From contig OZ287698.1 in NCBI GenBank assembly GCA_965649825.1, positions 75,849 to 139,848 of the forward strand: a DNA stretch of 64,000 bases. Reading direction: 5' to 3'. The notes under the pieces were generated by a model that saw nothing but the letters and a program-made list of their open reading frames with translations, was not told where the DNA came from and searched no databases. Made by a program: the position numbers and the translations under genes. This document shows positions 42,974 through 64,000 of the stretch, in pieces (positions within the stretch are counted from its first letter, which is position 1; each line of letters begins with the position of its first letter). This DNA comes from Penicillus capitatus (lineage: Eukaryota > Plantae > Chlorophyta).

Positions 42974-43082
42974 CACGAGACGACGACAGATGGCGAATCG
43001 TGCACTCGAAGACGGAATAACAGACTTCTCTGAATGTTGTAGTGTTGGACTACTCTCCTGCCATTTCATTTCCGTCCACGGT

Positions 43083-43790
43083 TTACATTTCCCCGCATTC
43101 AGTGATAAGACAAGGCAGTTTGGGTTTGTTGTTTGGACCGCATGGAACATTCTCAATTTTACGTACCACTAATAAACCGTCTCCCAAGACCCGACCAAAG
43201 ACCGTGTGCTTGTTGTCTAACCATGGACACTTGGCACATGTGATGAAAAACTAGAGATGACATTCTGCAGGATGGGAGAGAATAGACGGGATACGTACTT
43301 GACATCCATTGCTGTTGGGTCCACTGTTCGCCATCGAAAGCAGACCAGATCCAGTGTGCTTACAGCGAAAGGTCTCATCAGAAAATTTGGTGCCGTAAAT
43401 GCTCAGGCATCCCGTTCCATCTCCCTAGAGGCATTATTTCGGACACATACATCATAGGGGATGGATTTTGTTCACGTGGACAAAGTCGCCCGATTGGATC
43501 ATGAAATCTTTGATCACTCTGTGAAAGGAGCATCCCTTGTAACCCAATGGAATGTTGTTCTTTCTGAATTCTCCTGTGCAGAACTGCCGAAAATTCTCGA
43601 CGGTTTTGGGACAGATATCGGCCCAGAGCTCCATACGCATGCGGCCAGCAGGGATATCGCCAATGCTGACGTCTACGCCATCGTGTCCATACCGATGCGC
43701 ATGGCACCTTGTGTGACTCCTACCGAAGAAGACGACGGGATTGTCGGGATTCGGTGCGCGCACGTGCCACTGCACTTCTTCGTGCGTCAT
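43083..43790 (-). CDS. PPIH: Cyclophilin H (spliceosomal PPIase), multi-exon
   Basis: [64 protein letters not shown] and [12 protein letters not shown]. Confidence 0.92.
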
Positions 43791-43836
43791 ATTACACGAC
43801 AGACTGGACCAACAACGAAATGACGAATAAGACAGG

Positions 43837-45021: not shown

Positions 45022-45706
45022 CTCGGGATCGTTGTTGGATTGCTTGGTGAATAGCTTTGCCGCGACGTGAAGGTGCTGCGTCGCGGGGGACGTCACATCA
45101 ATGAGGCATACCGTAGTAAAGCTTCGCAACAAATCCGCACGCGTCGATTAGAAACTGAGGATACGACACCAACGAAATGAAATCCCGATCAACGACTTAG
45201 ACATGCGCTATGTCATGGAGGAGCCTTAAGATTGCCGACGGTTCTCATAATCCTGGCGCTTAGCTCTCATCTATTCGTCTAAAGAATACATCTCTAGCAA
45301 TACTGTCCGTCGTCTGTCCTTCAAAAATACTCTCAGCTGCAAAGACGGATGCAGAGGGAACAAGTCAGGGGATGATTGGTAGGCGACAACCGTCGAAGAC
45401 TAACGGCGACAAACAGATGATACAATGCTTTCGCTTTGTGGGTGTCCTCGGAGCATTGAAAGTGAATCGTCACGATTGTATGCTTAAGTACATTGACCTC
45501 GTGACGAACACCTATTCTTGTCATTTCGTTCACGCGCGAATTATCTCTTCAGGAAGACACTGACAACGACTCGACTCTCGAGGTACGTCGCACCGACGAC
45601 GACTCGATACGCAGTCGGAAAACGCACATGTAGGTGGTGACGTTGACGTTGTAGGTGTAGACAGTTTTTCGTTTTGGACCTGTTGACACAAGTTGAAAGT
45701 CACAAG

Positions 45707-46765
45707 ATGTCAAGAAAGGACACAGTACTGCTCTTCTTGTTTGTGTTGACCTCTTCAAGCACAGTTTTCGGAGACCGACTGCTTGATATTTCATTGCTGA
45801 CTTGGGGTGAATTGCAAACTCAAGCTGGGTACTTTACCAAAAGTGGTCGATGGAAAGGGGGTCTGCCTAAGAAAGTGCGTAAGGAGGCGGAACTGTTTGG
45901 TTCTTGCGAAGAAAGACAAGTCAATGGCACGTTCTGCCAATCGTGGACGTCTGAGGAAGAGCGCAAGGACAGCTATGGTAAAGGAAACTGCAAGTGTAGC
46001 AAGAACACGGGCGCATACTGCCAAGAATGGACGTGCCTTAGAGAACACACCAAGAGAACGTGCGAAAAGCGATACAAGAAGCGCTGCATTGCCACGCCGA
46101 AGGAAATGCATGTCCAGAGCTGTATCTGTCTCGAAGCCGCTGACAGTGGAGCATACTGCGTGAAGTGGAAGTGCAGTGAAGAGAGAAGACGTCGCCGGTA
46201 TAAGGACGGCGTGTTCACCTGCCGTGCGTCTGATGCATCTATGGAGTTCTGTCATCTCTGGAACGGCGATTTTGAATCGGATAAGGAAGTTGAGTCTATC
46301 GCCTGTGAATGCACTGATAGTGGCGATGGGTACTGTGACTACTGGCAGTGTCAGGCGAGGACACTACTTCGCTGCTCCAAGCACAAAGGAGGCTGGTGTC
46401 GTTTGGGAGTCTCTTTGGGTGTGTTCGGTTCACTCGGATTGCTTTTCCTGTCTGGGGGTATGGCGATTATTTTCGATGACGTTTTAAAGGGGAAGACAGC
46501 AGCGTGGAATCGCGGAAAGATACTGGCCATCTACGTCTGCTTTCTGGTGCTTCCGTGGGGAATTGGAGTAGCAATAGCGGGCGGCATTGACGGAATCGCA
46601 TGGGTGACGCTTATGTGGAGCATCCCATTTCTGATACTGGCATTTGTATTGTTTCAATCAAAGCGGGGTAAGGCTGCGGAACCATCATCGATGTTGGCCC
46701 CTTTGCAAGAGCCGCCTCAGATTCCTGCTTATCTGTTTGATGGGAAGACATATGCAGCATCTTGA
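45707..46765 (+). CDS. Cys-rich surface protein copy A (signal peptide, 20-Cys ectodomain, 3 TM), intronless
   Basis: Open 352-aa frame with hydrophobic N-terminus, WGELQTQAGYFTKSGRWKGGLP, three CxC..YCxxWxC modules, RCSKHKGGWC and three TM helices. Confidence 0.85.
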   Translation: MSRKDTVLLFLFVLTSSSTVFGDRLLDISLLTWGELQTQAGYFTKSGRWKGGLPKKVRKEAELFGSCEERQVNGTFCQSWTSEEERKDSYGKGNCKCSKNTGAYCQEWTCLREHTKRTCEKRYKKRCIATPKEMHVQSCICLEAADSGAYCVKWKCSEERRRRRYKDGVFTCRASDASMEFCHLWNGDFESDKEVESIACECTDSGDGYCDYWQCQARTLLRCSKHKGGWCRLGVSLGVFGSLGLLFLSGGMAIIFDDVLKGKTAAWNRGKILAIYVCFLVLPWGIGVAIAGGIDGIAWVTLMWSIPFLILAFVLFQSKRGKAAEPSSMLAPLQEPPQIPAYLFDGKTYAAS

Positions 46766-46889
46766 GGACTTGATTTTTCGCGTCTTAGCCTAGTCGACCT
46801 ATCTATTCTTTACAACTTTTAACGCGGACTCGGTCACCACTTTTTGCGTTGTTGAATTTCGAGAAGCCTTCAAGTACAACGATCAGTCT

Positions 46890-47950
46890 ACTCGAGACTT
46901 TCCCTATGCAAAATTCGGATAAAGAAGGGGCCGGCGAATGCACCCTGTATTGTCACATTCAACTGCGTCGCTGACTGACAGAGTGCTGTGACTAACCGAC
47001 TCTTAGATTCATAAAGAACAACAAGAGTCGAGTGCTTGATAAATCCGATATCCGCGTGAAATAACATTTTATTGTATCCGCGATGTAGATTGGAGAACAG
47101 TTTCTTACACACGTAGTATCGAAGTTTGTAAGTAAAAAGGAAGTCAGCAATAGATTTATTTCTTAGCTTTCAAGCGCGTTCTTTGGCTATTCAATCTGGA
47201 CTGGATGTGTGGGAACAATGACCGCCTTTGATACGAAGGAAGATACATAAAGAATCCTCTGAGCAAGAAGATAAAATATGTTCTTTCGGAGCATTCATTA
47301 TCTCTCCTTTGGCAAAGAGATGTTCGGATCACCTTTCTGCTTGAGGAATTTAGCGGACCAAGCTCTCATTAATAACTCTATAAACCAGACCATAAACGAT
47401 TCTTGATAATCCAAATGAAACACATGTGCCAGTGCGGTAATCACATTCTATGTCGGAGATCCTCACGTCGCGTTCGAACCGAAAAGGTAACAGACCTTCG
47501 TCTTTGAACGGTGTCAGAAGTTGTCCAAAAATTACAACAAACCATCCATCCATTAACCAAGAACGCGTCATACATGTATCAAAGACAGATCAACCTTTTC
47601 CACGCATCATTGAAGTAACAAAGATTGACACGGGAAATTATGATTTGAACAAAATAGAGAACCTGAGTGAATCGTTTGCCGACAAAGAAGAGAGGGTCGC
47701 CCGTCAGAAGCACTCACACAACATATACGAAGATGGAAACAAACATCCGTGCCTCTGCCAGGAAAGAGGGAGTGTTGTGGCTGCTGTGGGCGATACAGAA
47801 AACAACACCAATCGCCGTTGCTTTACTTGGACTCTCCAGAGTCAGGCTATGGTAACGCCTCCGAAGAAATTAAACATAGCTGTGCAGTCGATGCTGCTCA
47901 GCACTCTCGCATCGTGGCCATTATGAGAAGTGGAAAACTCACCTGGGAGA
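46890..47950 (-). pseudogene. Decayed multi-pass membrane protein gene (family uncertain)
   Basis: Hydrophobic peptide segments broken by stops: GVVFCIAH..MFVSIFVYVV*, VLYFVQIII..YFNDAWKRLICL*, FVVIFGQLLTPFKDEG and STLVVLY..LVTALC. Region is AT-richer than its flanks. Confidence 0.3.
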
Positions 47951-48603
47951 CAAGCACTGAATGGAGGAGGTTACTTGGTTCGGATTGATGGATTCATTTC
48001 TGGTTGTCATCCACATTGCTTCCGGATAACACTGGCCATAGCCTTTTCAGCTGAAGCTCGATAAGCGTGCTACAGACATGCGTGGCTTTCAATATGTTAA
48101 TGGCTACAGAAGACCAGCATCACTCGTGAGTGGCATCCGAACACTAAGAACTCGTCCTAGTGTGGAAAACAGACATTAGTAGACGTGTCGATCCAGTACA
48201 CAGATAACGAGCGCCTAGCCCACGTCATATGCGTCCATGACAAAACAGCTCAAGACGAATGAACTCGGACGTCGGCAATCTTTTCAAATCGAGTTCATGA
48301 GATGAAATTGAAAATCTCCGTGCTGACGTGCGCGATTCAAGATAAGTTCGTATGCCGTGGAGTGAAGCGCACCAGACATAACACTTACATGATATTACGA
48401 GTCTCGGATAATCACACTTTTTTATGTGTGAAGTGTGAAGTTCTCACTCGAGTCTGACAAAGCATAACAAAAGACACAATATGCATGCATATATATGTGC
48501 ACATTCCGAACGTATTGTTGTGTCGACAACGATAAAGAGCCTCTTACGCCAACGTTTGAATAACATAGCGGTTCTTGAGTTGACGGTGCTCTTCTGGTGA
48601 AGA

Positions 48604-49755
48604 ATGTTCCTTTTCCTGATGCATGATTCTCTCGGTGTTCTTACGGAACCTTCACTAAACGAAGCTCGACTGCGCGGTAAAGAGCCGCCAACGCACGTCA
48701 GCTTCGTGACAACTGTCATGGCCTCTATACTCTTCGCAATGATACACGTCCAAGCGAGAGAAGTCACTGGAAGCAGCTGGAGTGAGCTGGAAAAGAGAGG
48801 AGGGTATTACACGGAAGAAGGCACATGGCGCGGGGGATTTCCATGGATGGCTCACAGAGCCGAGAAAACTTTGGAAGTCTGTTCCGATAGGCGTCGTTCA
48901 GCCAATGGCACTTTTTGCCAATCATGGGAGATTGAGAGAGGTCGCGAATGGGCATCCAAAATTGGGTTCTGTCACTGCTCACGTCACATCGACGCATACT
49001 GTGACAGCTGGCGCTGTTCCTTTTCTTCTGAAAACAGCAATGGGTTCTGTCAGTCATTGCGAACACATCACTGCCTTCAGTTGTTGAACGAAGAAAAGGT
49101 CAAAAGCTGTGACTGTATGGAAGCTGCAGAGAATGGGATGCACTGTCAGCGTTGGAGATGTCTCACGAATGACGCTTCTGGTGGCAACCCAGAGGAAGGA
49201 CAATATCACTGCCTCAGTTCAAACTCTTTAAATACGTCCTGTCAGAAATGGGTGGGAGAATGGAACTCAGAGAAGGAAGTGCAATCGGATGTCTGTGAAT
49301 GCGAGCAGGAAGGAGATGGTCATTGCCACGCATACTGGTGCAAGACAAAATCGATGATCCGATGCTCTGAGCAATGGGGAGGATGGTGCCACTTGGAGAT
49401 TTCTATCGGCCTTTACGGGACACTCGGATGTTTCTTTTTGCTCATAGGGATGATGATGCATTGGACACATTGTGCTAATCGTCACGCCAATGTCACACGC
49501 GCAATTGTGGTGTGTTCATTGATCGTCATTCTTGTTATACTTTTGTTCGCTGTGGCCCTTACTGGGGGTGAGTATGGTCTGAGCTGGGTAGCTTTGATGT
49601 GGTTTGTATGTTTTCTTGTCTTGGTGTCGGTCAGAATGCTTTTGAAAGCGCAGCGGGTCAGGAGTTCATCTCTTATGCAGGATCCGAATGCACTACTGCC
49701 GCCTGACGAATACGGAATCCATCCCTACCTCTTCAACGGCAGGTTTTACCCTTAA
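48604..49755 (+). CDS. Cys-rich surface protein copy B, intronless
   Basis: Same 20-Cys pattern, WSELEKRGGYYTEEGTWRGGFP, RCSEQWGGWC, 3 TM and tail HPYLFNGRFYP. Confidence 0.85.
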   Translation: MFLFLMHDSLGVLTEPSLNEARLRGKEPPTHVSFVTTVMASILFAMIHVQAREVTGSSWSELEKRGGYYTEEGTWRGGFPWMAHRAEKTLEVCSDRRRSANGTFCQSWEIERGREWASKIGFCHCSRHIDAYCDSWRCSFSSENSNGFCQSLRTHHCLQLLNEEKVKSCDCMEAAENGMHCQRWRCLTNDASGGNPEEGQYHCLSSNSLNTSCQKWVGEWNSEKEVQSDVCECEQEGDGHCHAYWCKTKSMIRCSEQWGGWCHLEISIGLYGTLGCFFLLIGMMMHWTHCANRHANVTRAIVVCSLIVILVILLFAVALTGGEYGLSWVALMWFVCFLVLVSVRMLLKAQRVRSSSLMQDPNALLPPDEYGIHPYLFNGRFYP

Positions 49756-50162
49756 TTCGAGGCAACCCATCAGATTTCTGTTTTGCTGTTTTTGTCGCCC
49801 TATATAAGTATGTCGAGTAGCGCAGGAGCACGTGAGCGTATGGCCCTGATTTTTGCGGATGAAAACGGAGGGGACCGTAACATTCAATAAGCGTATCATC
49901 TCTGTTTTGCTGTTGTCAGCTGTTTCTTTTTTGCGCGGAAAGACAGTACAGTGAGAATCAATGAAAAAAATCGTACGAACGGGAAGTGGAGCGGAAAGTC
50001 TGACGTGTGAATTGGCATTGCTTAGATGTCTTGTTATATTTAAATTGAAAAGTCAGACGTACGTATTCTCCTCTAAACAAAACGATCACGCCCGTTGCGC
50101 ACACCGTTATCTGCAGATTCGCCCTGACTGTACCGTGATTTCTTCCCCGTTCTCCGCCGAAA

Positions 50163-51443
50163 ATGACACAACGCTCAAGCAGACGAACATTTACCAACAC
50201 AATGGTATTGCCTCAGGGCATCGGCACATGGCTGATGGCGACAGCCATGCTTCTTGGCGTGGCGAATGTCCAAGGCCTCGACATCTCACAGCACGGCTGG
50301 AGTTTTCTAGAGAAGCGAGCAGGATACTACACTGAGGACGGATACTGGAAAGGAGGATTTCCGAAGAGCGAACACAAGAAGGGACAGGTGTTTCACAGCT
50401 GCTCAGAGGTGCACAGCAGCGGCAACTTCTGTCAAAAGTGGAGAAGAGAAGGAGAAAGTGCCGAATCAACCAGACAAGGAACGTGTGACTGCGAGGATCA
50501 TACAGAGTTCTACTGCAAAGAATGGAACTGCATCGGAAAGCAAACGGAGACGCGCTGCCAGCCAGAATACGGAAAGATCTGCCGATTCCCACGAACGTCC
50601 CAAGGCGTCCAAAACTGCACATGTCTGACGCCTTCCGACAACCAGAAATACTGTTCCAGTTGGGCGTGTACGTTGGATATGGTCCGCAAACGTGCTGTAC
50701 AGGGAGAATACTTGTGTCTCGAAGGGAGTTCCCAGACAGAGTACTGTCAGCAGTGGATTGGTCACATCTCATCTGACAGAGAAGAGTTCTCTATCCTTTG
50801 CAAATGTGAAGGAAAGGACGATAAGTATTGCCGATACGGGAACTGTGAGACGAGAACGCTTCTTCGGTGCAATAAACACAAGGGAGGCTGGTGCAATCTG
50901 TGGTTGTCCATCTTCGTTTTTGGCGGCTTTGGACTCGTTTTCTTGGTTTCGGGAATATTGATTGTTTTTTCCGACTCGTTTGTCAATCCCGGCAAAACGT
51001 CGAACCTCATAATGATCCTTCTATTATACATTTGCCTCTTCGTTCTTCCGTGGGGAATTGGAGTGGCGAGTTCGGGAGGTCTTAAAGGCCTTGGCTACGT
51101 GGCAGTGCTCTGGTCGGGTTCTGCCGTTCTAACCGCCGTTTTCCTTCGATGCCAGAAACTCGAGTGGCAGCTACCCGGATGTGGAGATTTTCTTCGGTGG
51201 ATAAAAATACGGCCAAGTACCCTTCCCGGTTACGAGAGAGAAAGAGATACAATGTCACAAGAACAAGCACCATTGTTGGCAGACGAGAGGAGAAAGCCGT
51301 CGGGGCATACAGGACCTGAAACATCGACGGGCACTGAAGAACCGAGTCAAACGTGGACGCAACCCGCTCCAGCAATCCATGAGCGCAATCCGGATACAGG
51401 GGAACGCCTGCCGGATTCAAATTTGCCAAGCATTCATTCTTAA
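50163..51443 (+). CDS. Cys-rich surface protein copy C, intronless (start may be ATG ~50202)
   Basis: Same 20-Cys pattern, WSFLEKRAGYYTEDGYWKGGFP, RCNKHKGGWC, 3 TM and a long polar tail. Confidence 0.85.
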   Translation: MTQRSSRRTFTNTMVLPQGIGTWLMATAMLLGVANVQGLDISQHGWSFLEKRAGYYTEDGYWKGGFPKSEHKKGQVFHSCSEVHSSGNFCQKWRREGESAESTRQGTCDCEDHTEFYCKEWNCIGKQTETRCQPEYGKICRFPRTSQGVQNCTCLTPSDNQKYCSSWACTLDMVRKRAVQGEYLCLEGSSQTEYCQQWIGHISSDREEFSILCKCEGKDDKYCRYGNCETRTLLRCNKHKGGWCNLWLSIFVFGGFGLVFLVSGILIVFSDSFVNPGKTSNLIMILLLYICLFVLPWGIGVASSGGLKGLGYVAVLWSGSAVLTAVFLRCQKLEWQLPGCGDFLRWIKIRPSTLPGYERERDTMSQEQAPLLADERRKPSGHTGPETSTGTEEPSQTWTQPAPAIHERNPDTGERLPDSNLPSIHS

Positions 51444-51889
51444 AGAGATGAATTCTCTGTTCGTGTTACTAGAAGGAGAATTGCCAACACGAGAAGCTGA
51501 GGATTCATGTAAAGCTGGAAAACATCTGCCAATCAGCGACAGATCCGCCTTTGTTGGAGTACCCTTTCTCAGTTTTTAAGAGACATCCCAAGACGTAGAG
51601 AAAAGAAGATTCGAAGCGGTAGAGACAGACCTCGTTGCGTGTTTTAAGTGGTCTTCGTCAGGCACTGGAGGTCGTTCTCTCGTTCAGGATGAGGAGGGTG
51701 GATCGTTAGACATCTCCTGTTTATTAATCCGCCGTAGAAATGTCTAGCAGGAGGAGACTCGTTCGAGAGTCTCTGTGTCTTTCTTCTCTTCAGAGATGGG
51801 ATAGAGAAAATGAAACGTGTGATGTTCGTCGTTTTTTGTTTGATTCGAGGAGTATGCTTCTCCTGTTGCCCTTAAAACAAACGGTCAAT

Positions 51890-52170
51890 TTAGGAACACT
51901 GACTTTTCAATCCTCCGCGCATAATCGCCACGTTGCAGCTCGAATTCGAAGTCTGCTCGCTACACCTGACGGTGCAGTATGCGACAATTCACCGATCCCC
52001 TAAAGAGCACAGCAGTCAGTCACAGTTCCAGACCCTCTTACACATCTCGGACTTGCGTCTGTGAGATGAGCATCGATTTGCCTGTGCGCTACCTCAACTC
52101 ATTGATTCAGAGTTGTCGAAGCATTGACACTGTGATCGGAGATTTGTCGACCGAGATGAATGACAAAGGT
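51890..52170 (+). repeat. Copy 1 of a ~270-nt duplicated block (5' region of decayed copy E)
   Basis: Aligns to ~54910-55175 and includes the identical run tctcggacttgcgtctgtgagatgagcatcgatttgcctgtgcgctacctcaa. Confidence 0.9.
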
Positions 52171-52800
52171 ACGTGTTAATTAATGTCCGACTGAGAGTGT
52201 GGTCAGGAGGGGGTCTGTTCATACGAACCGGCTCTAGAGAATCCAATCTGCACGATGTTTACAGGGAGAAGCGCGCCAACATCAGTCTCTGTCGATCGTA
52301 GCGTAGACGTCGCACGAATAGAGCGTCGACGTCTCCGGCGGAAGGGAGTGCAAGTGTGCGAACAAGAGGCTGGCTGCATTACCTGAGTCGAGAGTGCAGC
52401 GAGAGCAATAGTGGCAGATCGAAGACCTGTGTTCTTTTGTCTTGGAACTGACGCATCCGCAGCAGTAAATTTGTATCGGACAGGGAAGTTGAGTCCATTT
52501 ATCGCCTGCCGAGTGTAACCACAGCGGCGAGGGATGCTGCAGCCACCTACAGTGTCAGCATGCAAGGACGCTGATTCAGTACTCCAAGCATAGAACAAAC
52601 TGGTGTCGTCGGGGAGTCTCTTTGGGTGTCTTCGGCTCGCTCGGATTGCTCTTCTTGTTCGAGGAATGGCGATGATAATTCTCAGAAACGTCTTCAAGGG
52701 GAAGACAGCGGCGTGTTACCGCTGAAGGATCTTGGCCATCTATCTACGTCTGCTAACGAGCACATGAACGATATCGAAGGAATGGTGCTTATCTAATGCC
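52066..52800 (+). pseudogene. Decayed Cys-rich surface protein copy E (closest to copy A)
   Basis: Nucleotide match to copy A (e.g. ggaagttgagtc, ctccaagca, tggtgtcgt, ggagtctctttgggtgt, aaggggaagacagc). TAG at 52299-52301 replaces the Trp of FCxxW. Several frameshifts and an internal deletion. Confidence 0.8.
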
Positions 52801-53254
52801 TCCCTGAAATGGGATGGAGCTTGTGCCCTTCGAGACGTAGACAACCGGTCTTATCATAATCGTCACCGCTGTCATAGAGTCATTGACAATTCCCACTGGG
52901 CCTCAGCTGAGAATCGTGCGTAATCGCCCTGACTCTCATTCTCTCGAGCGTCCTTTTTGCATCAGAACAGTCGTCAAGAGAAAGAAGGTTCTGACGCTGT
53001 GCCGAAAGACACTGGACCCTTGTTCTGTGGAAGCAGTGCAGCATTCTTCTCTCAGTGCACATGGAGCTGTGTGGAATAAAGTCGTGCTGCCTGTCGCACA
53101 ACGATCGCAACCAGGTTTAATGATTCGCCAATGGGCAAATCCCACCCCGACGTCATTCATTTCTGTTCTCACTCGAGGTCAATGACCTCGCCGAATCGCG
53201 AAAGAACGTCCGACGTGTCTCTGAAAAGACACTTCTTATATAGTCGCTGAGTCG

Positions 53255-54628
53255 GTGCGTTTGGTACCGACGACGAACGTACGAACGAACGAGCTGCTTG
53301 ATACGCGGCACACGTGTTTCAGCAACGCAGTGAAGGCAATGACTTTCGTTTCTCTCCATGTTGCGCCAAGTCCTCTGGCGATAAGGAAGAAGACTGCACC
53401 AAACACGTCAACGACGTCCGGACGAGCAGCGGCCGCTCTCGTCACGACAGTTCTCTTGCTCGGCTTGACTACGAATGCACGAGCTGATGACGAGTCTGGC
53501 GGACTCCTCAGTTGGGGACAGCTTCAGAAGGAGGCAGGCTATTTCTCGAAGAGCGGTCTCTGGAGAGGAGGCTTGCCGAAGAAGGAACGCAAGGAGGGAG
53601 ACGTTTGGAGCAACTGCTTAGAGAGACACGGCAATGACAGCTTCTGTCAGAAATGGGAGGAGAAGGGAGATAGTGCACAAGAGTTCAGGAATGGAACCTG
53701 TACCTGCAACGAAGTGAAAGATTCGTACTGCAATCAATGGACGTGTATCAGCGAGGAGAAGGCGAGATATTGTTCAGAGCGAGGCAGAAAGGGCAAGGGA
53801 ATGGCGCCGGTATGTAAGACAGACGTCGAAATGCTTGAGGACTGTTCCTGCCATGAAAGCCTGGGGACAAATACAAGTTCTTATTGTCTGAAGTGGAGAT
53901 GCACCGAGAATGACGGTAACGGTACTTCAAGATCCGGCGATTATTTCTGCCACGAAACAAAGACTGAAAACTCTTCAACTCCTTTCTGCAATCGCTGGTC
54001 TGGGGAATTGACGTCGAATGGTGATGTGGAATCGATCAGTTGCGACTGTACCATTGACGACAATGGGTACTGTGAGAACTGGGAATGTAGTGTAAGGACT
54101 TTGCCTCGGTGTTCAGAGCACAAGGGAGGATGGTGTCATCTGGAACTGTCCATTGCTGTGTTTGGACTGATCGGACTCCTCTTCTTAATCTTTGGAATGG
54201 TCCTTGTTTTTTCCAACCAATGTTCGAGACACACTAGCAGGGACATGCAGCTGAAGATTCTTATAATATACACTCTCTTTCTTGTTCTTCCATGGTTTGC
54301 TGGCGTTGCTCTGTCGGGAGGTGTTATAGGCATTGTAGTGGTGATTGCGATGTGGATCATTCCTTTCATCGTATTGGCATCAGCGATCATTGTACCTCAG
54401 ACTACCGCATGGCAAAATTTTCGTGCTGCAATGGAGAGAATGTTTACGAGCGAAGCTACAAGCGGCAACGGAGAACAAACAGCCTCTCCTTCAGACAGGA
54501 CAGCGCCTTTGATGCACGGTAGACCCGAAGATGATGCGGACAGGGACGACACCCCTCAATCGTCAACACAGGCAAATCCGGCAATCCGTGTACGCGATGA
54601 AGCTACAGGGAAATTGTTGGATCCGTAA
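53255..54628 (+). CDS. Cys-rich surface protein copy D, intronless (start may be ATG ~53339)
   Basis: Same 20-Cys pattern, WGQLQKEAGYFSKSGLWRGGLP, RCSEHKGGWC, 3 TM and several N-x-S/T sequons. Confidence 0.85.
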   Translation: MRLVPTTNVRTNELLDTRHTCFSNAVKAMTFVSLHVAPSPLAIRKKTAPNTSTTSGRAAAALVTTVLLLGLTTNARADDESGGLLSWGQLQKEAGYFSKSGLWRGGLPKKERKEGDVWSNCLERHGNDSFCQKWEEKGDSAQEFRNGTCTCNEVKDSYCNQWTCISEEKARYCSERGRKGKGMAPVCKTDVEMLEDCSCHESLGTNTSSYCLKWRCTENDGNGTSRSGDYFCHETKTENSSTPFCNRWSGELTSNGDVESISCDCTIDDNGYCENWECSVRTLPRCSEHKGGWCHLELSIAVFGLIGLLFLIFGMVLVFSNQCSRHTSRDMQLKILIIYTLFLVLPWFAGVALSGGVIGIVVVIAMWIIPFIVLASAIIVPQTTAWQNFRAAMERMFTSEATSGNGEQTASPSDRTAPLMHGRPEDDADRDDTPQSSTQANPAIRVRDEATGKLLDP

Positions 54629-54909
54629 AGTACTAATCCTTGAAGAGATTGATTCTCTGTTGGCGCTACTGGAATGAGGATCAGCATTACGAGGAACCAA
54701 GGGATATGATGTTCGGACAAAGTCCACCAGTGCAGCAGTCAGTCAGTGCATCAGGAAATCCATCTTGGATCTGAGTTCTTCAAGTTCTCCGGCATGTTTT
54801 ACTTTTCCTAAAAGACATTCAAACCGTAGAAAAGAATGGTTTGTACGACTGAAGGAACTGTAACCGTTTATTTGTCATCTCTCCACCGATCAACAAATAG
54901 TCGATCTAA

Positions 54910-55175
54910 AAACATTGACTTTTCAATCATCCTTAGCGCAATATCGCCGTCACGTTGCCTCTTGAACTTAACTCTGCTCGTTAGATTTGACTCCACAGTA
55001 TGCGATCATTTGCCGCTCCCCTAAAGAGCACAGCAGTTGGTCACATTCCAGTGCCACTAGTGCGTCTCGGACTTGCGTCTGTGAGATGAGCATCGATTTG
55101 CCTGTGCGCTACCTCAAGTCATTGATTCAAAGCTGTCGAAACATTGATGCTGTGATCGGAGATATGTGGACAAAG
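54910..55175 (+). repeat. Copy 2 of the ~270-nt duplicated block (5' region of decayed copy F)
   Basis: Aligns to 51890-52170. Confidence 0.9.
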
Positions 55176-55700
55176 ATCACAAAAATAAACATGAATCCTC
55201 GACTGAGAGCGATCTTTGTAAGAGCGTCACCCCCGGAGAGCTCGTAGGTGCGAGATCTGTGTGATGTTTATCGGGAGAAGAACGCTAACAAGAGTGTCTT
55301 TCGGTTTTGTTACGACCGAAGGCGCATTGCTGGATATCCAGCGATACACAACTGTCAAAATTCTTCCTTCGCTACCAAGATGGACATGGTCTCGTTCAAA
55401 TTTGCACGTCGTCAGTGAAATCAGTCTACTGTCGTACAGCATGCTGATCTGTTGTAGCGTCAGATCCGTGCAACGCATGTTTACCTGAAGTTGTCTTCGT
55501 GACAGTCATGGGCCTCAACGACTACTCCGTCACAGTCGATGGTGGAGTTACTTTCGAAGTGTATGTCTGTTAAATTGCAGAAGTACTGCTCGCTGTTCCC
55601 TTTCTGTGAGAATTCTCTACATTTTATAACTCAGTTGATTGCCTCAAACCACGGACGACTTCTCCCTTCACAGGTCATCTTCGTGGTCAGAAGAGGATTG
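55086..55700 (+). pseudogene. Heavily decayed Cys-rich surface protein copy F
   Basis: Shares the ATG region with copy E. LCDVYREKNANKS parallels E's LHDVYREKRANIS. Remnants such as QKYCS are present, with stops and frameshifts. Confidence 0.55.
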
Positions 55701-55939
55701 TGCTCAGATGTGGCAACAAACTCTGCAGTCATCCAGAAGCTGTTACCAGACTCGGAATGCTCGATTTGACAGGATGCTTTAATCGAATCGCCACGATCTG
55801 CATCTAGTCCAAACGAGAACGTCCAACTCATCTACCTCCACTGCGAACTTTCGTGCGAACTTTCAGAAGAGGTAAGCCACTTCGCCGGTTTCGCCGAACC
55901 ACAGGCGACGACGTTCTGTTGTGCAGACTCGGATTAAAC

Positions 55940-58900
55940 ATGCAAGCCCGTGCTGCAGATGAAGGACCCAGCGGCAGAGGGTCATCCGCGCCGAGAACCG
56001 GCGGCCGAACCGTCACCGAAGACACAGTGGTCACCGCAGAGCGTTACAACCCGAAACTCCTACGCGCTGCAGCGAAGAAGCACAACATCGACAGCACCGA
56101 GTCGCTGGTCGCGGCCTACAACTCGACCACCAATCAAGATGAGCGCGCTGTCCTGCTCGGATGGCTGCGCAAGTACCACGAACGAAAGGCGGACTGTCTC
56201 ACGCCGAAAGCTGTGCTCGAGTATGCGGCGCTGGCCGACGTCGCCCCACGTTCCGCCAGCGAGAAAGATGTTGTGCAGAATTTGATCTACGACCTTTCCT
56301 CGTGCATCTGCGAAGGAGACTTCCTAGCGCCGACTTTTGCCACTGCCCTCCACAGAGCACTCGTGCTCGTCGATCCTTCCGCGCTCGACGCCGTGGAACA
56401 GCTGGTCGTCGTGGCCATGAAGCTCCTGGGCAGCCTCTCTCCAAGACCGAAGCTTACAAGAAAAACCTTTGCGAAGCACGAGGCGACGTTTCTTGCATTG
56501 CATCAGGCCTTCTTCCTGCTTCGCGAAGCCAATCAAGCCCTGATCGACGAAGAAGAGAAGCAGGAGCTGCGAAGAACCGTCGCAGAGAAGGAGAGAACGA
56601 TGAGACTCTCCTGCAAGCACTACCCTGTGAGTTTTCATTTCAAAGCGCTTCGTCAGGCGGCAGAACGTCTCAAAGACGAGGAGGCTGCTTCACGAGTCGC
56701 ACAGGCGAATCAGTATGCCATGTGTGGACTCTGCGCATTCGTGCAGGTCTTTCATTTTCTCAGGAATCTGGCAAGGGGCGACATCGATCCGACGGCCCTC
56801 GAGGACGCGTACGAAACAAATCGAGCAGCCATTAATAACATGGGAGTGGCGAAGCGACCGTGGTTCGACTCGTTTCGAAGCCTGATGGCGAAGAGGCTGG
56901 AAGCGTCGAAGGACGAGACGACGCTCGAGCTTTTTGGAAGCAGCTACCAGGCGTCGATGGAGAACCAGAAAAACGTGAAGGATGGAGAAGATCTGAAGGC
57001 GTTGAGATACGGCATCGTCTGTGAACTGCGCACGCTCGCACTCGAAGGTCCGTCGGAAGACGCCCGAGCCGCGGCCGCGACGAAGCTGGTGGATCTAGCG
57101 ACGCAGCAAGCCATCAGCGAAGGATGGAGCGATGACATCGATATCCTCGTCGCACTCTTGGACGCTGTATGCGAGCTGCATGGAAGAGGCGAGCGCAACG
57201 AGGACATCAGACACGCGTTGCTGGCCATACAGCGATCTTGCACGGGTCATGCCCGAGGAGCATTCTCGGAGTGGTTGGGTGGAGGTAGCGTGGAAGACAA
57301 GCTTGCAGTTCGGAGTCCGCAGAGAGCTGTCGCAGAAAACAACGATCTGTGCATCAAAATCGGCAGAGACGTGGGGTACATCCCTCTTGCCGTCATGAAT
57401 TCGAAGGGAGAAGAGCTGAGGAATAGATATAAGCGCGACGATTTCGCGACGGTATTGGCACGAGAAGCGCATTCGAGTTGACGAGAGGTTCCTGTTCTCT
57501 AGGTGACTTCCTTGTTCGAAGAGGGATCTTCCAAACACGTCAAGGACATGAAGCACCATGTCGTCATCTCCGAGGAAGTTATCGAAGAGCAAGGATTCGG
57601 AGAAGGAAGAGAAGAAGCTGTCCGGGGAGTGGAGGCAACAAAGGCAGAGTCCTCAAACCGCAGAGGGGACCAACCGAAGGAGTACTACGAGAAGAAGACA
57701 AGAGTCACGAAACCCATCGCTCTGGGCGACTTGTTCAGGCCGAGATCTCTCAGACCCGGGGATCCGGAGAGCGAGGTTCGAAGGGTCCTCCTCTACGGGA
57801 ACCCCGGTTCCGGAAAGACGTGCATCACGAAGGCCGTCGCACACAGATGGGCGTCGGGAGAGATGGCACGGGACCTCGACGCCGTTTACGTGGTTCCAGT
57901 GAGAGTTCTCAACCGCGGCGAGTACAACGGACGGAAGTGGTCAAGACTCGAGGGAGCGATATCGCAGATATGCTTCGCCGGAAGCGGGCACGCCTTCGAC
58001 CACGAAGACCTCGTCTCCCAGGTGGAGCACGACCTCGACGACCCGTCGACCATGCTCATGGTCGACGGTTTGGACGAGGCAAATGACCTTGCGATGGAGC
58101 TCCTTTCCACCGTATGGGAGCGCTCGTGCAAGGTGCTGCTTCTCTCTCGTCCGTACAACATGAGAAACGTCGAAACGCGTGTCGACGTTCAAGTGGAGTG
58201 CCTCGGATTCAACGACCAGCAGCTGCGAGAGTACGTAGAAGGCGAGCTGTCGGAGGACGAGGAGGCCCCGCGACTCATCCGTTCTCTTGAGGAATCCGGC
58301 GCCATGTGGGAGATGGCACACGTTCCTGTGACGGCGCACATTCTGTGTTCCTTGTCGAAGGAGCACGGAACGGCGATCGAAGAGCGAGGGAAGAGAGCGA
58401 GCGTCTTTCAGGTGTACAACGACATGGCGAACTACATCTGGAAGAGGTTCAAGACGAAGCCGGCGGCGACAAACGTGAAGAGATCGGATCTCTTCGACGA
58501 CTTGGAGAGAATCGCATTCGAGTCGCTCAAGCGAAGCCTGATCCTCATCCCTCCGCGACTCGTCATGCGATACGCAACGTCGACGGACGCGGCCGGAACG
58601 TTCAAGGAGAGCGGACTGCTTCTGCTCGTGATGGAGGGCCGGGAGTACCAATTCCCCCACCTCACGTTCCAGGAGTACTTCGCCGGAAGACACATCGCGA
58701 AAGGCTTACGAAACTCGGGATCCGCAGAGGACGTCAGAGTGCTCGAGTTCATCCGCGAAGAAAAATACAATCGAAAACATGCTTTAACGCTATCCTTCGC
58801 CATGCACGCGTACGCAGAGGGACGCAGCAAGTCGGCACTGCAAGGGATGCTCTCGGTCGTCGACGAAGACCCCATCGAAGTTCTCGGGATACAGCACTTC

Positions 58901-61465
58901 TTCTTGAGGATGCGAGCTCTCGAGGCGATCATAGAAGAGACAGACGAAGGCGACATGGATGACATACTGAACGACGAACAAGCAGTCGCGCTCGCCGAGA
59001 GTGCTCGCCATCTGCTCGAGCGCACGATCTACGACGTTATAATGCGCGAAATTGTGGTCAAGGAGTTCCAGCAGATGTCCGGCGTCTTGGAAGGATTCCC
59101 TCAAGTTCTCAGAAACACTATTGACGAAGTGAAGAAGATGCTGGCATCCGCGCATAAACTAACATGGAAAGAAATGGCCAAAATCACAGATGTCTCGAAG
59201 CTCGCAAGGCACTCAGTGAAGCATAGCAATGCATTGGTTCAATTCGTGTTACAACGAGCAGAAGAATCCGATGGTTGTTGTGATCCAGAAGAATGCATCA
59301 GAAGGTTAAGTTTCATCGGAAAACAAGTACCTCAGCATGCCGGCAAGGTTTTGGTGATGCTGGCGAAGAAATGCGAGAAGGCAGACGCGTCCGTGCGTAA
59401 AGCAGTGATCAAAGCCATCGTCCATGTCATCTTGACAAGCCCGCAACACGCCGGCGAGATTCTGCCGACGCTCGTAGAGGAGTGCAGCGACGAAAATTGG
59501 AAAGTCCGTGAGACGGCGATTAAAGCTCTTGATAACGTCGCCGCAGCAGCTCCGCAGCACGCCGGCGAGATTCTGCCGACGCTCGTAGAGGAGTGCAGCG
59601 ACGAAAATTGGAAAGTCCGTGAGACGGCGATTAAAGCTCTTGATAACGTCGCCGCAGCAGCTCCGCAGCACGCCGGCGAGTTTCTGACTACACTCGCAAA
59701 GGAGCACGGCGACACAGATTGGAAAGTGCGTCGGGCAGCGGTTGAAGCAATCGGCCGAGTAGTCGCCGCGGTGCCGTGGCGTGCCGGCGAGTTTCTGCTG
59801 ACGCTCTCTAAAAAGCGCGGCGGTGAACGTCCGACCGTGCGTCGGGCGGCAATCAAAGCTATTGAACACGTACTCGCGGCAGCCCCGCAGCACGCCGCCA
59901 AGTTTCTGCCGACGATTGCGAAGGAGTGTGGCGACGAACGCGCAGACGTGCGTGAGACGGCGATCAAAGCCATCGACCACGTCGTCGCAGCGTCCCCGCA
60001 GCACGCCGGCGAGTATCTACCAACGCTTGAGAAGGGATGCGTCGACGAACGCGCGGACGTGCGTGAGACGGCGATCAAAGCCATCGACCACGTCGTCGCA
60101 GCGTCCCCGCAGCACGCCGGCGAGTATCTACCAACGCTTGAGAAGGGATGCGTCGACGAACGCGCGAACGTAGGTGAAGCGGCGATTAAAGCCATCGGTC
60201 ACGTCGTCGCAGCGTCCCCGCAACATGCCGGCGAGTATCTACCGACGCTCGCGACGGGGTTCGACGACAAACGCTTGACCGTTCGTCGAGCAGCGATTGA
60301 AAGCATCGTCCGTGTAGTCGTCGAGGCGCCACAGCACGCCTGCGAGTTTTTGCCGACGTTTGCAAAAGGGTGCGGCGACTTAGACTTCAAAGTGCGCCGG
60401 GCGGCAGTTGAAGCCATTGGTCGCGTTGTCATCGCGTCTCCACAGCACGTCGGCGAAGTTCTGCCGACGCTGGCGAAGTGGTGTGTCGACGAAGACTCGT
60501 ACGTGCGTCGTAGAGCGATGGAGGCCATTGGAAGCGTCGTCGCGGCGGCGCCCCAGCACGCCGGCGAAGTTCTGCCGACGCTGGCGAAGGGGTGTGTCGA
60601 CGAAGACTATGACGTGCGTTCTCGTGCGATGGAGGCCATTGGAAGCGTCGTCGCGGCGGCGCCCCAGCACGCCGGCGAAGTTCTGCCGAGGCTGGCGAAG
60701 GGGTGTGTCGACGAAGACTATGACGTGCCTTCTCGTGCGATGGAGGCCGTCGGCAAAGTGGTCGCGGCGGCGCCCCAGCACGCCGGCGAAGTTCTGCCGA
60801 CGCTGGCGAAGGGGTGTGTCTTCGAAGACTCGGACATGCGTCGTAGAGCGATGGAGGCCATTGGAAGCGTCGTCGCGGCGGCGCCCCAGCACGCCGGCGA
60901 AGTTCTGCCGACGCTGGCGAAAGGGTGTGTCGACGAAAACTCGTACGTGCGTCGTAGAGCGATGGAGGCCATTGGAAGCGTCGTCGCGGCGGCGCCCCAG
61001 CACGCCGGCGAAGTTCTGCCGACGCTGGCGAAAGGGTGTGTCGACGAAAACTCGTACGTGCGTCGTAGAGCGATGGAGGCCGTCGGCAAAGTGGTCGCGG
61101 CGGCGCCCCACCACGCCGGCGAAGTTCTGCCGACGCTGGCGAAGGGGTGTGTCTTCGAAGACTCGGACGTGCGTTGTAGTGCGATGAATGCATTAAATAG
61201 CATGAACCCAGAGAAGATTGTCGTTTCGGCAATGTCAATTCTCCCTAAGCATAGAGTCGGCATTTATTTTTACTTTGTGCGTTACCCGTTTACCTTGGAT
61301 TCTCCTACAAAGCAGAAAACAGTTCCCTTAGTCTTGCATGCGACTTCTTCCCAGAAAATCGGAAAGTGGAGTAAGGACAATGTTGACCTCGTTGTTTCTC
61401 TCTTGAGACGAGAGTTTGATGAGAAGTTTCCCGGATTGTTAGAACATCTTGATAGAAAGGAGTAG
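55940..61465 (+). CDS. NLR-like STAND protein: ~500-aa helical N-domain, NACHT NTPase, 17 HEAT-like repeats and a short C-domain; one intron 57452-57502; ~1824 aa
   Basis: Phase-0 GT..AG intron joins ORF 55853-57481 to ORF 57503-61465. Walker A GNPGSGKT (57797-57820), Walker B LMVDGLDEA, VLLLSRP, WEMAHVPV and YQFPHLTFQEYFAG. Confidence 0.88.
59327..61213 (+). repeat. Intragenic tandem array of 17 x 111-bp (37-aa) HEAT-like repeats
   Basis: Consensus APQHAGE(V/I/Y/F)LPTLAKGCxDExxxVRxxA(I/M)xAIxxVVAA. Units 2-3, 7-8 and 15-16 are nearly or exactly identical at DNA level. Confidence 0.95.
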
Positions 61466-61490
61466 CTCAGAAGCAGACTTCATTCTGTAC

Positions 61491-63390
61491 TTTTTTTTTG
61501 ATTGTGGGCTTTTACAACTCCTTTTTGAGAAGATCAGGAGTGCGTCTGTACATTGAGTGAAAACCAAGAATCCATGTATCCCATGTGTCTTCCTTAAGGA
61601 TGCCAGGCAGCCTGGTTTAGGAGTTGCACCAAATTCTTCCTTCTTGTCTCCACTTGGCACTGATGTCTTCTACGAACTCCGACATCTCTTTCGGAAACTG
61701 GAAGATGCACGCAGTTGAGAGCGTTCCCGGGATCTGTCGCTGGAGCTTCCTTCGTGCTTCATGAAACAAAGGGCATTCCAGCAAGAGGTGATCTCTGTCT
61801 TCTAGAGCCGCTCCACATGAGCATTCCGGGGATTCGGCCAGGGCTCCAAATCTGAATAGGTATTGTTTCGAAGGGAAATGGTTTGCTGCGAACTGCGAGA
61901 GTCTGGAAGCCTGGGGTCTCTCTAGGTATTTCCCAGGGAAGTGCCCTCGTCGGAAATTCGTCAGGTGCGCCGTTAGATGGAAGCTGGTGTTTCGCTGTTT
62001 AATGTCCTTTGCTGCCTCCTGATTCAAAAATTGCGCGATCCGGTGCTTGATCCATGATCTGTCCGGCGGGATTCCCTTTGGACCGCCACTGCAGTCTTCT
62101 GTGATAGTGTTTGACCGTCTCCACTCTGACAGGGCATAGGATAAACCGGGTTTCCATTTCTGAGTTGCCCAGTAGGTCGAATGGCCATCCATGGCCCAGT
62201 CAAGGAGTTCCTGTTGTATCTGGATGCCGGTTTCGGAGACGTTGGTCCAACTTAGAGCTGCTTTCTGGATTCGGTTCGAGTCGACAATTACGACCAGGCT
62301 TTGTCTTCGAATCGGTGCTGTCGAGGTCAACCGCTCTTTTAGGGTGCATAGGCCCTTGTACAGACCCACAAGTGTGGAGATCTCCTCCGACGCCCAGTCA
62401 GGATCCCACCAGCTTTCCCCCTGTCGGTTGTCTCCTTGAAAGAGTCCCCAGCTGGTGCCGAGGCGGTGACGGACTCTATCTTGTTGTGTCGAGACAGACA
62501 GTATCCAGTCTGGGCGTTCAGAGGCCGGTATTGAAGCTGGGCCTGAGAGGAGTTCCAATTGGGAAGGCGATATCGGAGACCACGGATGGATCCGTTGAGG
62601 TGGAATTTCCAGAGGCCTTCGAGGAGTAGCTCTCTGCCAGCGGGACCACGCAATTCTGCGGTAACATTGACCAGCTGACCGTTCAATTCTGGCTTGCAGA
62701 GACATCGGGGTAGCCGGCTTTCTGTGTCTTCTCCTGGCATCAAAGTACAGCGCTTGTTGCACAATTTGTTGGGTGGGCGGGCGGACCCCTGCTAGCGAGT
62801 AGGCTGAGGGGTATGAGGTGGTCCTGAATGTTCCCGCTAGGAGCAAACATGCCTGTCTCATGACTTTCTCCAGATGACCCGCTGTCCGTTCATTGTAAGC
62901 TGCTCTTTGCCACACTTCTGCTCCGAAATATGCAGCTGGTTCAATAACCCTGCTGACCAGCTTCTCAACGGCTTCAGGTAACATGCCCCAGGTCGGGCCT
63001 GTCAATCGTCGAATCCAGTCCAGGCGCGTGCGGACTTTCCCAGCTGCGCTGGCCACTTGCGTGTTCGAAGAGGTCGTCTCATCCAGCCATACTCCAAGGT
63101 ACAGGATGGCGGATTTCTTGTTGAGTTGCTGCCCACGCAGGAATACAGGGAGAGAGTCAGTCCGTCTTCTTCTTTTCACGAATCGGATCTGAAAGCATTT
63201 CTCTGGGGCGAAGATCAGACCTCTGTCTTGGGCCCAGAAGTTCATGCGGTCTAGGGTCTCCTGAAGCATTATTTGCGCTGATCTTTCAGTCGGAGCTGTG
63301 CTCAAAACCAGAATATCATCAGCATAAGCTTGAATGTGCAGGGCCTCTGTGTCTTGAGCCAATTCCAGAATCGGATCCATGCCTATTGTT
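61491..63390 (-). mobile_element. 5'-truncated non-LTR retrotransposon (LINE; I/Tad/R1-type architecture: RT, RNase H-like, CCHC)
   Basis: Intact 587-aa ORF 61617-63380 with AYADD, YLGVWLD, thumb FGAEVW, RNase H-like IVDS and ECSCG..HLLLEC. A9 tail (T9 at 61491-61499 on +). Upstream RT domains absent. No target-site duplication found. Confidence 0.9.
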
Positions 63391-64000
63391 GGCAGTCGGC
63401 GCGGCCTGGAGGTGGTCGACGGATGCCCCGCGGCGTTCTGCGCGTAGATACGAGACGCGCAAGACCAGAACCAATTGATTAATATTCATTGTCCTGTTCA
63501 CAAATCTATGCTCATCCACAGTTACTATCCACATGCTTCCCTGCGCACTCCGATCGGTAACTCTAATCGGCCAGCCAAACCACTGGAAAGCATGTCTTGT
63601 TCCGTCGCTTGGATACCAGTGACAAGGAAGAATCTGATTATCACGATCCTCGTCTGCAGATGTGCAGATTCCAGCGCATCTTCTCCCGTGTCCACGGTTC
63701 GCCGACGCTTTTGCATGGTTGTCGGTCTTCAGTTCGACGATGGATGGCGCATTTTTCGCCAGACGGAGCAATCACCTCGCGCGGTACGTCATCCTCTGTC
63801 ACCGCATGGTGTGTCCGTTCAGGCGTCCCATCGTCGGCCCCTTGGCTGGAGTTCCCCTGGCATGTCCGCGACGACACGTCAGCGCCACGCGACCTCCACT
63901 GCGCATCCACGACTGCGCATGGAGTCGCCAGACTGCGACACCTCAGCCAGGCCGACGCGACCCCGCAAGACAGCACTACCGGCTGATGCGACCCGCGACA

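Follow-up and report, generated by a model that had tools for sequence, protein, structure and literature searches.

A Cys-rich membrane-protein array beside a NACHT-HEAT gene in Penicillus capitatus: two gene families in one fast-evolving segment

Where genes for putative surface proteins lie next to a gene for an NLR-like protein, it may be asked whether the two form one recognition system or are neighbors by descent. This question is raised by a 64,000-nt stretch of Penicillus capitatus DNA from contig OZ287698.1 (the window), in which four Cys-rich paralogues, named A to D, are followed by a NACHT-HEAT gene and a LINE (Table 1). The original prediction regarded everything from ~45.7 kb onward as one accessory island and as a candidate two-tier recognition locus, composed of extracellular variable receptors and an intracellular NLR. 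We think it rather likely, though well short of certain, that the answer is a different one, namely that two independent, lineage-expanded families share one recombination-prone segment by inherited position, with no functional link indicated. The array of A to D and one decayed fragment would have arisen in tandem by local duplication of a membrane-protein family, and the NLR-like gene belongs to a very large group of STAND/NLR-like NTPases. The biochemical functions that we infer below, and any role in immunity, are proposals.

Two contigs served for comparison: ERZ25074695:ctg340486_42x_l (1.02 Mb; the public contig), which is from the same organism and carries the array ~84-99 kb from its start, and ERZ26696514:ctg303794 (1.16 Mb), which is from another sample and belongs to a sister species. 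The sister-species contig is collinear with the window, with genes for phytochelatin synthase, Vac_ImportDeg and an ESCO-type acetyltransferase followed by A to D, the decayed fragment (at its syntenic place, L007 3313-3420; L numbers denote retrieved loci) and a NACHT-HEAT gene. The adjacency of D and a NACHT gene is present both in the sister species (L007) and on the public contig (L015) and thus predates the species split. Nucleotide identity between the two species is 85.6% in the housekeeping block, 70-73% in the Cys-rich array and 78% in the NACHT gene. By blastn, it falls from 85.6% (35795-45234) to 73.4% (45230-46928) and is 70-73% across 45230-55305, in agreement with the end of a housekeeping block that had been predicted near 45.7 kb. 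The open reading frames (ORFs) of the window also bear out that all intact genes from there on lie on the + strand. The description of this stretch as accessory did not hold, as the whole array, including the decayed fragment, is collinear in both species with no presence/absence difference. Haplotype-level presence/absence variation had been proposed as a check; the array shows no difference from the public contig, and the assemblies diverge only in the NACHT-LINE part. Composition does not mark out one island either, the Cys-rich part having a G+C content of 45-50% and the NACHT gene one of 57-60% (about 50% overall). Judged from these comparisons, the stretch is best described as a fast-evolving segment, prone to recombination and duplication, and not as a presence/absence island.

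Pairing of the two families was not seen at independent loci. Six other loci were inspected, ±3-10 kb each. The flanks of four other Cys-rich loci (L008, L009, L010 and L011) gave no match to the NACHT domain, the HEAT repeats or the N-terminal domain of the NACHT-HEAT gene, and two other NACHT-HEAT loci (L004 and L005) gave no Cys-rich match. Co-localization of further copies, which the original prediction had itself put forward as a test, was found at 0/4 further Cys-rich loci and 0/2 further NACHT loci, a small sample, and as far as this test goes the two-tier link fails it. Two distant members of the Cys-rich family lie on a 1.67-Mb contig of the sister species amid Tab2-like, ABC transporter, trypsin and fasciclin genes, and distant members are present as single copies among housekeeping genes. 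A search of JGI metagenomes for related loci gave no match. The only second pairing occurs on the public contig itself, where D2, an inverted copy of D with 84% amino acid (aa) identity, is found ~15 kb beyond D (L006 3078-4478, - strand). D2 lies 5.5 kb upstream of NACHT copy 2, which is 22 kb downstream, with a NACHT 3´ fragment between the two. The pair of D2 and NACHT copy 2 is a local rearranged duplicate and not an independent association.

The boundaries of the duplicated units point the same way. All alignments of the NACHT gene with its paralogues and orthologues start at 55657-55709, indicating that the NACHT unit duplicates together with its own ~280-nt upstream region and never with a Cys-rich gene in register. 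Where the window departs from the public contig, it does so within the NACHT-LINE unit and nowhere in the Cys-rich array.

How do these observations bear on a two-tier locus? If the Cys-rich array supplied extracellular sensors and the NACHT-HEAT gene an intracellular sensor or executor, the two being held together by selection as a coupled recognition module, the conserved adjacency in the sister species and the public contig would be explained, as would the position of D2 near NACHT copy 2, the common orientation of all five genes in the window and the fact that both families evolve several times faster than their neighbors. We nevertheless regard such a module as very unlikely, given that no pairing was seen at the four other Cys-rich or two other NACHT loci and that D2 is inverted, 5.5 kb away and set apart by the intervening 3´ fragment, such that the pair was not preserved as a unit. 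The ectodomain, moreover, is the conserved and not the variable part of the Cys-rich proteins, the sister-species orthologue of A is frameshifted while its NACHT neighbor persists, and the variation between the window and the public contig stops exactly at the edge of the NACHT unit. The 1.67-Mb sister-species contig with its two family members is also absent among the 120 NACHT-HEAT matches listed and from the list for the N-terminal domain, though this is a weak point, as both lists consist of 90%-identity cluster representatives. A more specific version, in which a coupled surface and cytoplasmic module was kept since before the species split and re-duplicated as a pair (D2 with NACHT copy 2), with the tails of the membrane proteins signaling to the NLR-like protein or being guarded by it, seems to us, if anything, slightly less probable still. 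Were it true, and the organism a stramenopile alga as the clues given below would suggest, it would be the first such two-tier locus in that group, and a two-tier locus of any kind would be a striking convergence with plant and animal immune loci; the tests speak against it.

Several points weigh against our own reading of two unconnected families. D and the NACHT gene have remained neighbors from a time before the species split (dS, the synonymous divergence, ~0.3-0.5), and a D-like copy is found again within 5.5 kb of the next NACHT paralogue. At ~4 NACHT-HEAT genes per Mb, the ~1.3-kb gap between the two genes would be unlikely under uniform placement (roughly 2%), in a calculation that is post hoc and concerns a single case. 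With six other loci inspected at ±3-10 kb each, a looser association may exist. The function that we propose for the Cys-rich protein derives from a pattern of constraint and a predicted fold with no known relative, and the N-terminal domain of the NACHT-HEAT protein matches no known effector, such that its NLR mechanism is argued by analogy. Still, the case shows that being neighbors in a recombination-prone segment says little in favor of a functional link, and the reading of independent families in a shared segment is the one that we retain.

Rates of evolution were compared between the two species. Pooled housekeeping codons gave 93% aa identity, a nonsynonymous divergence (dN) of 0.038, a dS of 0.32 and a dN/dS ratio (omega) of 0.12, a value that is approximate since some frames may be non-coding. 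For the B, C and D orthologues, the corresponding figures were 55-68% aa identity, a dN of 0.22-0.31 (6-8 times that of the flanking genes) and an omega of 0.37-0.40; B (orthologue P0003) had 55% aa identity, dN 0.31, dS 0.84 and omega 0.37, and C (orthologue at L007 930-2180) 66% aa identity and omega 0.40. The N-terminal domain of the NLR-like protein was 70% identical at the aa level (omega 0.35) and its NACHT domain 81% (omega 0.24). When the three Cys-rich orthologue pairs were divided into regions, omega was 0.24-0.32 for the ectodomain, 0.46-0.53 for the transmembrane (TM) region and 0.27-0.65 for the tail. The label of extracellular variable receptors is therefore not one that fits, with the ectodomain being the part most conserved between orthologues and the family being old, with members in brown algae. 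Because the ectodomain is the most constrained part, it would have a conserved binding target, such as a component of the wall or matrix or a partner that is itself conserved, in place of forming a variable recognition surface. Tentatively, from this constraint and the predicted fold, we place the Cys-rich protein in the membranes of the secretory pathway or at the cell surface, where it may bind a conserved ligand or partner, and take the local array to be possibly a lineage-specific expansion under relaxed constraint.

The same rates could be read the other way, with the Cys-rich genes as a surface family that diversifies rapidly, perhaps in the recognition of gametes, self or pathogens, and in which the apparent constraint is an artefact of averaging over two sequences. 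The local tandem expansion to 4-5 copies with 33-43% identity between paralogues would suit this explanation, as would the loss of one copy to pseudogenization in each lineage and the dN of 6-8 times that of neighboring genes, and the N-glycosylation sequons and 21-24 Cys residues would fit a secreted ectodomain. The whole-gene omega of 0.37-0.40 speaks against it, as do the ectodomain values, which are the lowest of the three regions, the conservation of the Cys/Trp scaffold and fold as far as brown algae and the single-copy state of distant members among housekeeping genes. On balance, we find a diversifying family unlikely and favor a constrained one that expanded locally.

The four Cys-rich genes are intact and uninterrupted, consistent with the intronless paralogues that had been predicted, and are pairwise 33-43% identical. 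Their alignment has ~60 invariant columns, mostly Cys, Trp or Gly; each protein has 21-24 Cys, and N-glycosylation sequons are present. All have an N-terminal hydrophobic, signal-like segment, an ectodomain with three C..W / CxC / YCxxWxC modules that is predicted to be disulfide-rich and all beta, TM segments and a tail. By hydropathy, the ectodomain is followed by two to three or more hydrophobic segments, which are read as three TM helices with the help of the alignment and the model of D. Gene A is annotated as a 352-aa gene on the public contig (ERZ25074695:ctg340486_42x_l). A non-coding block in the 3´ flank of C is duplicated after D (54892-55177), and a second block is shared by the ends of the two genes (51428-51481 matches 54628-54681 by self-blastn); the flank block marks the tandem duplication from which C and D arose. 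A decayed gene had been placed ~240 nt before the NACHT gene. No decayed copy is detectable there, and the block at 54892-55177 is only the non-coding duplicate of the C 3´ flank. Likewise, the several pseudogenes of the original prediction are reduced to one A-like fragment, which matches aa 212-259 of A with 69% identity by tblastn, the family profile with E 1e-14 by six-frame hmmsearch and 46271-46541 with 73% identity by blastn; searching the window by tblastn, six-frame hmmsearch and self-blastn revealed no further decayed copy of the family.

We also noted that the acidic/Pro-rich tails of C and D (~51330-51440 and 54540-54625) and of their orthologues evolve fast elsewhere but share an end motif, PAI(H/R)xR(N/D)xxTG(E/K)(R/L)L, while A and B end instead in YLF(D/N)G(K/R)xY. 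These may be sorting or interaction motifs. The sister-species orthologue of A (P0004), whose counterpart in the window is intact, has a frameshift after ~aa 150 and is probably a pseudogene.

How widely is the Cys-rich family distributed? An exhaustive search with a hidden Markov model (HMM) yielded 144 representatives, of which 31 had E values below 1e-30. A word-indexed search had returned 4 proteins, missing even C, D and D2, and the idea of an orphan family confined to a single locus was rejected. Among the members are brown-algal proteins, CAM9858132.1 and CAM9719478.1 from Ectocarpus fasciculatus and EP00904_P003204 from Undaria pinnatifida, which share the whole architecture with A-D: a signal peptide, AGYYTxxGxYxGG, three Cys/Trp modules, three TM helices and VxIWGG. 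They are only ~25% identical to A-D, and none has an assigned function or a Pfam family. No further family member was found in the flanks of the Undaria-type gene (L011; on a 41-kb contig) over ~7.5 kb upstream and 10 kb downstream, so it is not part of a local array. Pfam searches with A-D and with 40 family members matched no family.

An AlphaFold (AF2) model of D, built with a 40-sequence alignment, has a pLDDT of 82.7 and a pTM of 0.72, with ten long predicted beta strands followed by TM helices. A fold search of this model against PDB gave nothing at E ≤ 1e-3, and a search of a viral structure library gave a single borderline match (E 9.2e-4, TM 0.13/0.24). TM-scores were ≤ 0.34 throughout, with unspecific matches to beta-barrel proteins and Cys-loop receptors. 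The Cys-rich genes thus represent a family with no Pfam match or informative name, which brown algae also have and whose confidently predicted fold is unmatched among solved structures or predicted viral ones.

The sample from which the public contig was drawn yielded further relatives. A D-like gene with 56% aa identity is present at L010 (ERZ25074695:ctg289225_2x_l; 11 kb, 2x coverage), and NACHT-HEAT genes also occur on 42x and 344x contigs; the ERZ25074695 sample seems to comprise several eukaryotes or strains related to one another. On a contig of the same coverage, a Tab2-like gene and a weak match to chlorophyllase lie near a family member and indicate a photosynthetic organism. Taken by themselves, these clues, the brown-algal members of the Cys-rich family and the ~50-nt introns would point to a probable ochrophyte (stramenopile) alga.

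The near-intronless NACHT-HEAT gene was predicted correctly. Two same-frame ORFs, 55853-57481 and 57503-61465, are joined by a single 51-nt intron into a product of ~1,824 aa from the ATG at 55940. The splice sites (donor GGTAYT, acceptor TAG|GTGA) are conserved in 5 paralogues with a length of 50/51 nt, and the 1-nt difference shifts the frame between the exons in the sister-species copies L004 and L007. As such a difference is tolerated here and would be impossible in coding sequence, 57452-57502 is read as an intron. The second exon matches Pfam NACHT PF05729 (E 4.3e-11, 43.4 bits against a cut-off of 26.7, aa 93-251), with strong matches to HEAT families. A tripartite layout as in STAND/NLR proteins, with an N-terminal domain, a NACHT domain and superstructure-forming repeats, is therefore united in a single gene, across a conserved intron. 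If other NLRs are a guide, the HEAT solenoid would act as the sensor, the NACHT domain as a nucleotide-driven oligomerization switch and the N-terminal domain as the output.

No recognized effector (TIR, CARD/PYD, HET, HeLo, patatin and others) was detected in the N-terminal domain by Pfam, by sequence comparison with PDB or by fold search. Its AF2 model is all alpha (pLDDT 79.6). Pfam gave nothing above the cut-off, and the 85 homologues are likewise free of Pfam domains; no PDB sequence matched below E 0.78; and Foldseek against PDB gave a weak ARM/HEAT-like resemblance (TM ≤ 0.33), with no match at E ≤ 1e-3. We regard this domain as a candidate new output module.

The HEAT array was recognized by Tandem Repeats Finder (TRF) with a period of 111 and 15.3 copies. 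Repeats 11-17, the last seven, average 80% identity, with neighboring repeats 13-16 at 78-95% and the most similar neighbors at 89-95%. The number of repeats varies between copies: a regular expression counted 16 repeat motifs in the window (17 by register; 1320-aa ORF), 9 in copy 1 of the public contig (1156 aa) and 13 in copy 2 (1193 aa), so the window copy has more than either. New specificities could arise by unequal crossing-over and gene conversion within and between these near-identical 111-nt repeats. The family is large, with at least 171 relatives at E ≤ 1e-3 (85 for the N-terminal domain) on dozens of contigs, four of them on the public contig (about 4 genes per Mb). The N-terminal domain of the window gene is equidistant from the syntenic sister-species copy L007 (dS 0.48) and the non-syntenic copy L004 (dS 0.50), which indicates concerted evolution or recent lineage-specific duplication in the NACHT family.

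The sister-species gene (L007 11563-16436) consists of a 346-aa NACHT ORF and a 1190-aa HEAT ORF with about 30 repeats, nearly twice the number in the window copy. The two ORFs are 260 nt apart, reflecting either an extra intron or a disrupted gene. Two small ORFs of 78-80 aa (L007 8506-8989 and L004 7363-7840) are found repeatedly upstream of the sister-species NACHT-HEAT paralogues, in a 3.6-kb insertion between D and the NACHT gene that the window lacks; they may be a small mobile element or part of the duplicated unit.

The LINE of the original prediction is also present, as documented by an RVT_1 match, a poly(A) remnant, 5´ truncation and filled and empty sites. The poly(A) remnant starts 27 nt past the NACHT stop codon, seen as a T9 run on the + strand at the junction. 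In the window, RVT_1 is matched over its C-terminal part, and in the L006 copy, to which the element is 100% identical up to 63836, over its N-terminal part. A Cys/His-rich stretch at the C-terminus of the reverse transcriptase (RT) ORF is read as a putative CCHC knuckle, and no endonuclease domain was seen in the element. The site is empty in NACHT copy 1 (...GTACTT|GGCGG...) and filled in the window and copy 2, which would fit insertion of the LINE just behind one NACHT copy and its later transfer by duplication or conversion.

Is the NACHT-LINE part of the window a genuine copy? Over 35709-55640 (about 19.9 kb, including the Cys-rich array), not one base differs between the window and the public contig, and divergence begins at 55641, the left edge of the NACHT unit. 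From there, the window NACHT copy is ~97% identical to copy 1 of the public contig, which is at the same position and has no LINE downstream, and ~95.5% identical to copy 2, which has the LINE downstream. Informative sites from 55641 form a mosaic, with 115 shared with copy 1 only, 71 shared with copy 2 only and 98 unique to the window, in runs. The window copy could be a second haplotype that arose by gene conversion or unequal crossing-over, or could reflect an assembly join through paralogues. In the latter case, the assembler would have crossed, after the 3´ flank of D, to a consensus sequence or a mix of NACHT-HEAT paralogues, such that 55641-64000 is a chimera and the window gene does not exist as such. 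Such an origin would account for a sequence that equals the public contig up to 55640 and then neither copy, for 100% identity of 61100-63836 to copy 2 and its LINE, for the final 164 nt of the window, which match none of the retrieved loci, and for zero differences in the 19.9-kb flank next to ~3% in the gene, which would be odd for two haplotypes. We consider a chimera improbable all the same: no mixture of copies 1 and 2 could produce the 98 window-unique sites, which lie in runs; the frame stays open through 1,824 codons, with the repeats in an exact register of 37 aa; and the pattern is also explained by a recombinant haplotype or by gene conversion, for which any of >100 paralogues could be the donor. 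In addition, D followed by a NACHT unit that starts at the same base is found independently in the public contig and the sister species.

What comes closest to the NACHT-HEAT gene is the repertoire of fungal NLRs whose repeats show high internal conservation (HiC; PMC4986451; Dyrka et al. 2014), in which STAND repeats of >85% internal identity and repeat-number polymorphism were described, along with HEAT-type repeats in some Podospora STAND genes; the published HiC criterion is computed differently from the repeat identities given here. Fungal NLR-like STAND proteins (Podospora HET-E/HET-D/NWD) have the same layout of N-terminal domain, NACHT domain and repeats, the same scale of repertoire (>100 genes per genome) and the same near-identical tandem repeats with differences in repeat number and signs of concerted evolution. 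Here, in contrast, the host is photosynthetic, the repeats are 37-aa HEAT repeats and not WD40, ANK or TPR, and the 500-aa helical N-terminal domain matches no known fungal effector domain (HET, HeLo, PNP_UDP, patatin and others). Bacterial NACHT/STAND proteins with HEAT repeats (Parachlamydia, Planctomycetota and Bacteroidota; bNACHT antiphage proteins) share the combination of NACHT and HEAT and were the only named relatives in the search, at 20-28% identity. They are very distant, lack the N-terminal domain and the exact 37-aa high-identity array, and differ from the window gene in that the latter is eukaryotic and has a spliceosomal intron. Literature searches for algal NACHT-HEAT families gave fungal and bacterial work only.

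Plant RLP/RLK-NLR clusters and invertebrate allorecognition loci likewise combine tandem surface-protein genes with an NLR-type gene in a fast-evolving segment bearing transposable elements. Unlike the surface proteins of these loci, the Cys-rich family has no LRR, Ig domain or kinase and its fold is unmatched; its ectodomain is constrained, there is no recurrent co-localization, and the two species show no presence/absence difference.

Collectively, two parts of this locus are of greater interest: the NLR-like family, for its near-identical HEAT repeats of 37 aa, and the Cys-rich protein, for a predicted fold that has no match. The former gives a photosynthetic organism a very large NACHT-HEAT repertoire in public data, with hallmarks so far documented mainly in fungal NLRs: near-identical repeats, variation in repeat number, mosaic gene conversion and association with a LINE. 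This repertoire supports a repeated origin of repeat-shuffling NLR repertoires in eukaryotes.

Table 1. Features of the window (positions in nt from its first letter; "." marks features given without strand).
Feature	Position	Strand	Basis
ABC ATPase	9760-11076		
JmjC/cupin	12521-13345		
ClpP-like protease	15300-16001		
DUF789	24509-26245		
eRF1/Pelota-like gene	31791-32513		
SNF2 helicase	about 36.6-38.2 kb	-	
Phytochelatin synthase	about 39.4-40.6 kb		
Vac_ImportDeg	42470-42970		
ESCO-type acetyltransferase	43.4-44.2 kb	-	
Left boundary: end of conserved housekeeping block and intergenic region before gene A	45230-45706	.	blastn identity switch
Cys-rich paralogue A, 352 aa; signal peptide, 21 Cys, three hydrophobic TM segments (~46394-46660)	45707-46765	+	ORF, alignment, hydropathy
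Cys-rich paralogue B, 345 aa from the Met nearest the signal peptide; ORF open from 48604	48718-49755	+	
Cys-rich paralogue C, 413 aa; ORF open from 50163; long acidic/Pro-rich cytoplasmic tail	50202-51443	+	
Non-coding block in C 3´ flank, duplicated after D	51876-52157	.	self-blastn, 80% over 288 nt
Sole decayed family fragment, A-like, ~aa 212-291, over two frames	52470-52755	+	tblastn, hmmsearch, blastn
Cys-rich paralogue D, 429 aa; ORF open from 53255	53339-54628	+	
Left edge of NACHT duplication unit and its upstream (promoter-side) region	55641-55939	+	alignments begin 55657-55709
NACHT-HEAT exon 1: 504-aa all-helical N-terminal domain	55940-57451	+	ORF
51-nt GT..AG intron containing an in-frame stop	57452-57502	+	sequence
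NACHT-HEAT exon 2, 1320 aa: NACHT NTPase, helical linker, HEAT array	57503-61465	+	Pfam, motifs
NACHT domain; Walker A GNPGSGKT (57797-57820), Walker B MLMVDGLDE (58052-58078)	57779-58255		
17 HEAT repeats of exactly 37 aa (111 nt)	59321-61207	+	TRF, repeat table
5´-truncated LINE (non-LTR retrotransposon), tail-to-tail with NACHT gene	61493-63836	-	RVT_1, filled/empty sites
LINE part: poly(A) remnant	61493-61501		
LINE part: RT C-terminal ORF	61617-63380		
LINE part: further RT piece	63641-63835		

The block upstream of the segment (1-45200) contains ordinary genes on both strands, and Rfam and tRNA scans of the window found no RNA gene. The Vac_ImportDeg ORF reads through an in-frame intron of ~45 nt around aa 113-128, where the sister species has a stop codon. 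Together with the 50/51-nt intron of the NACHT gene, this suggests a genome with unusually short (~50 nt) introns. Finally, a dispersed repeat of ~280 nt with 69-74% identity occurs just upstream of D (52824-53106) and near NACHT copy 2 (L006 5842-6135 and 19248-19532).

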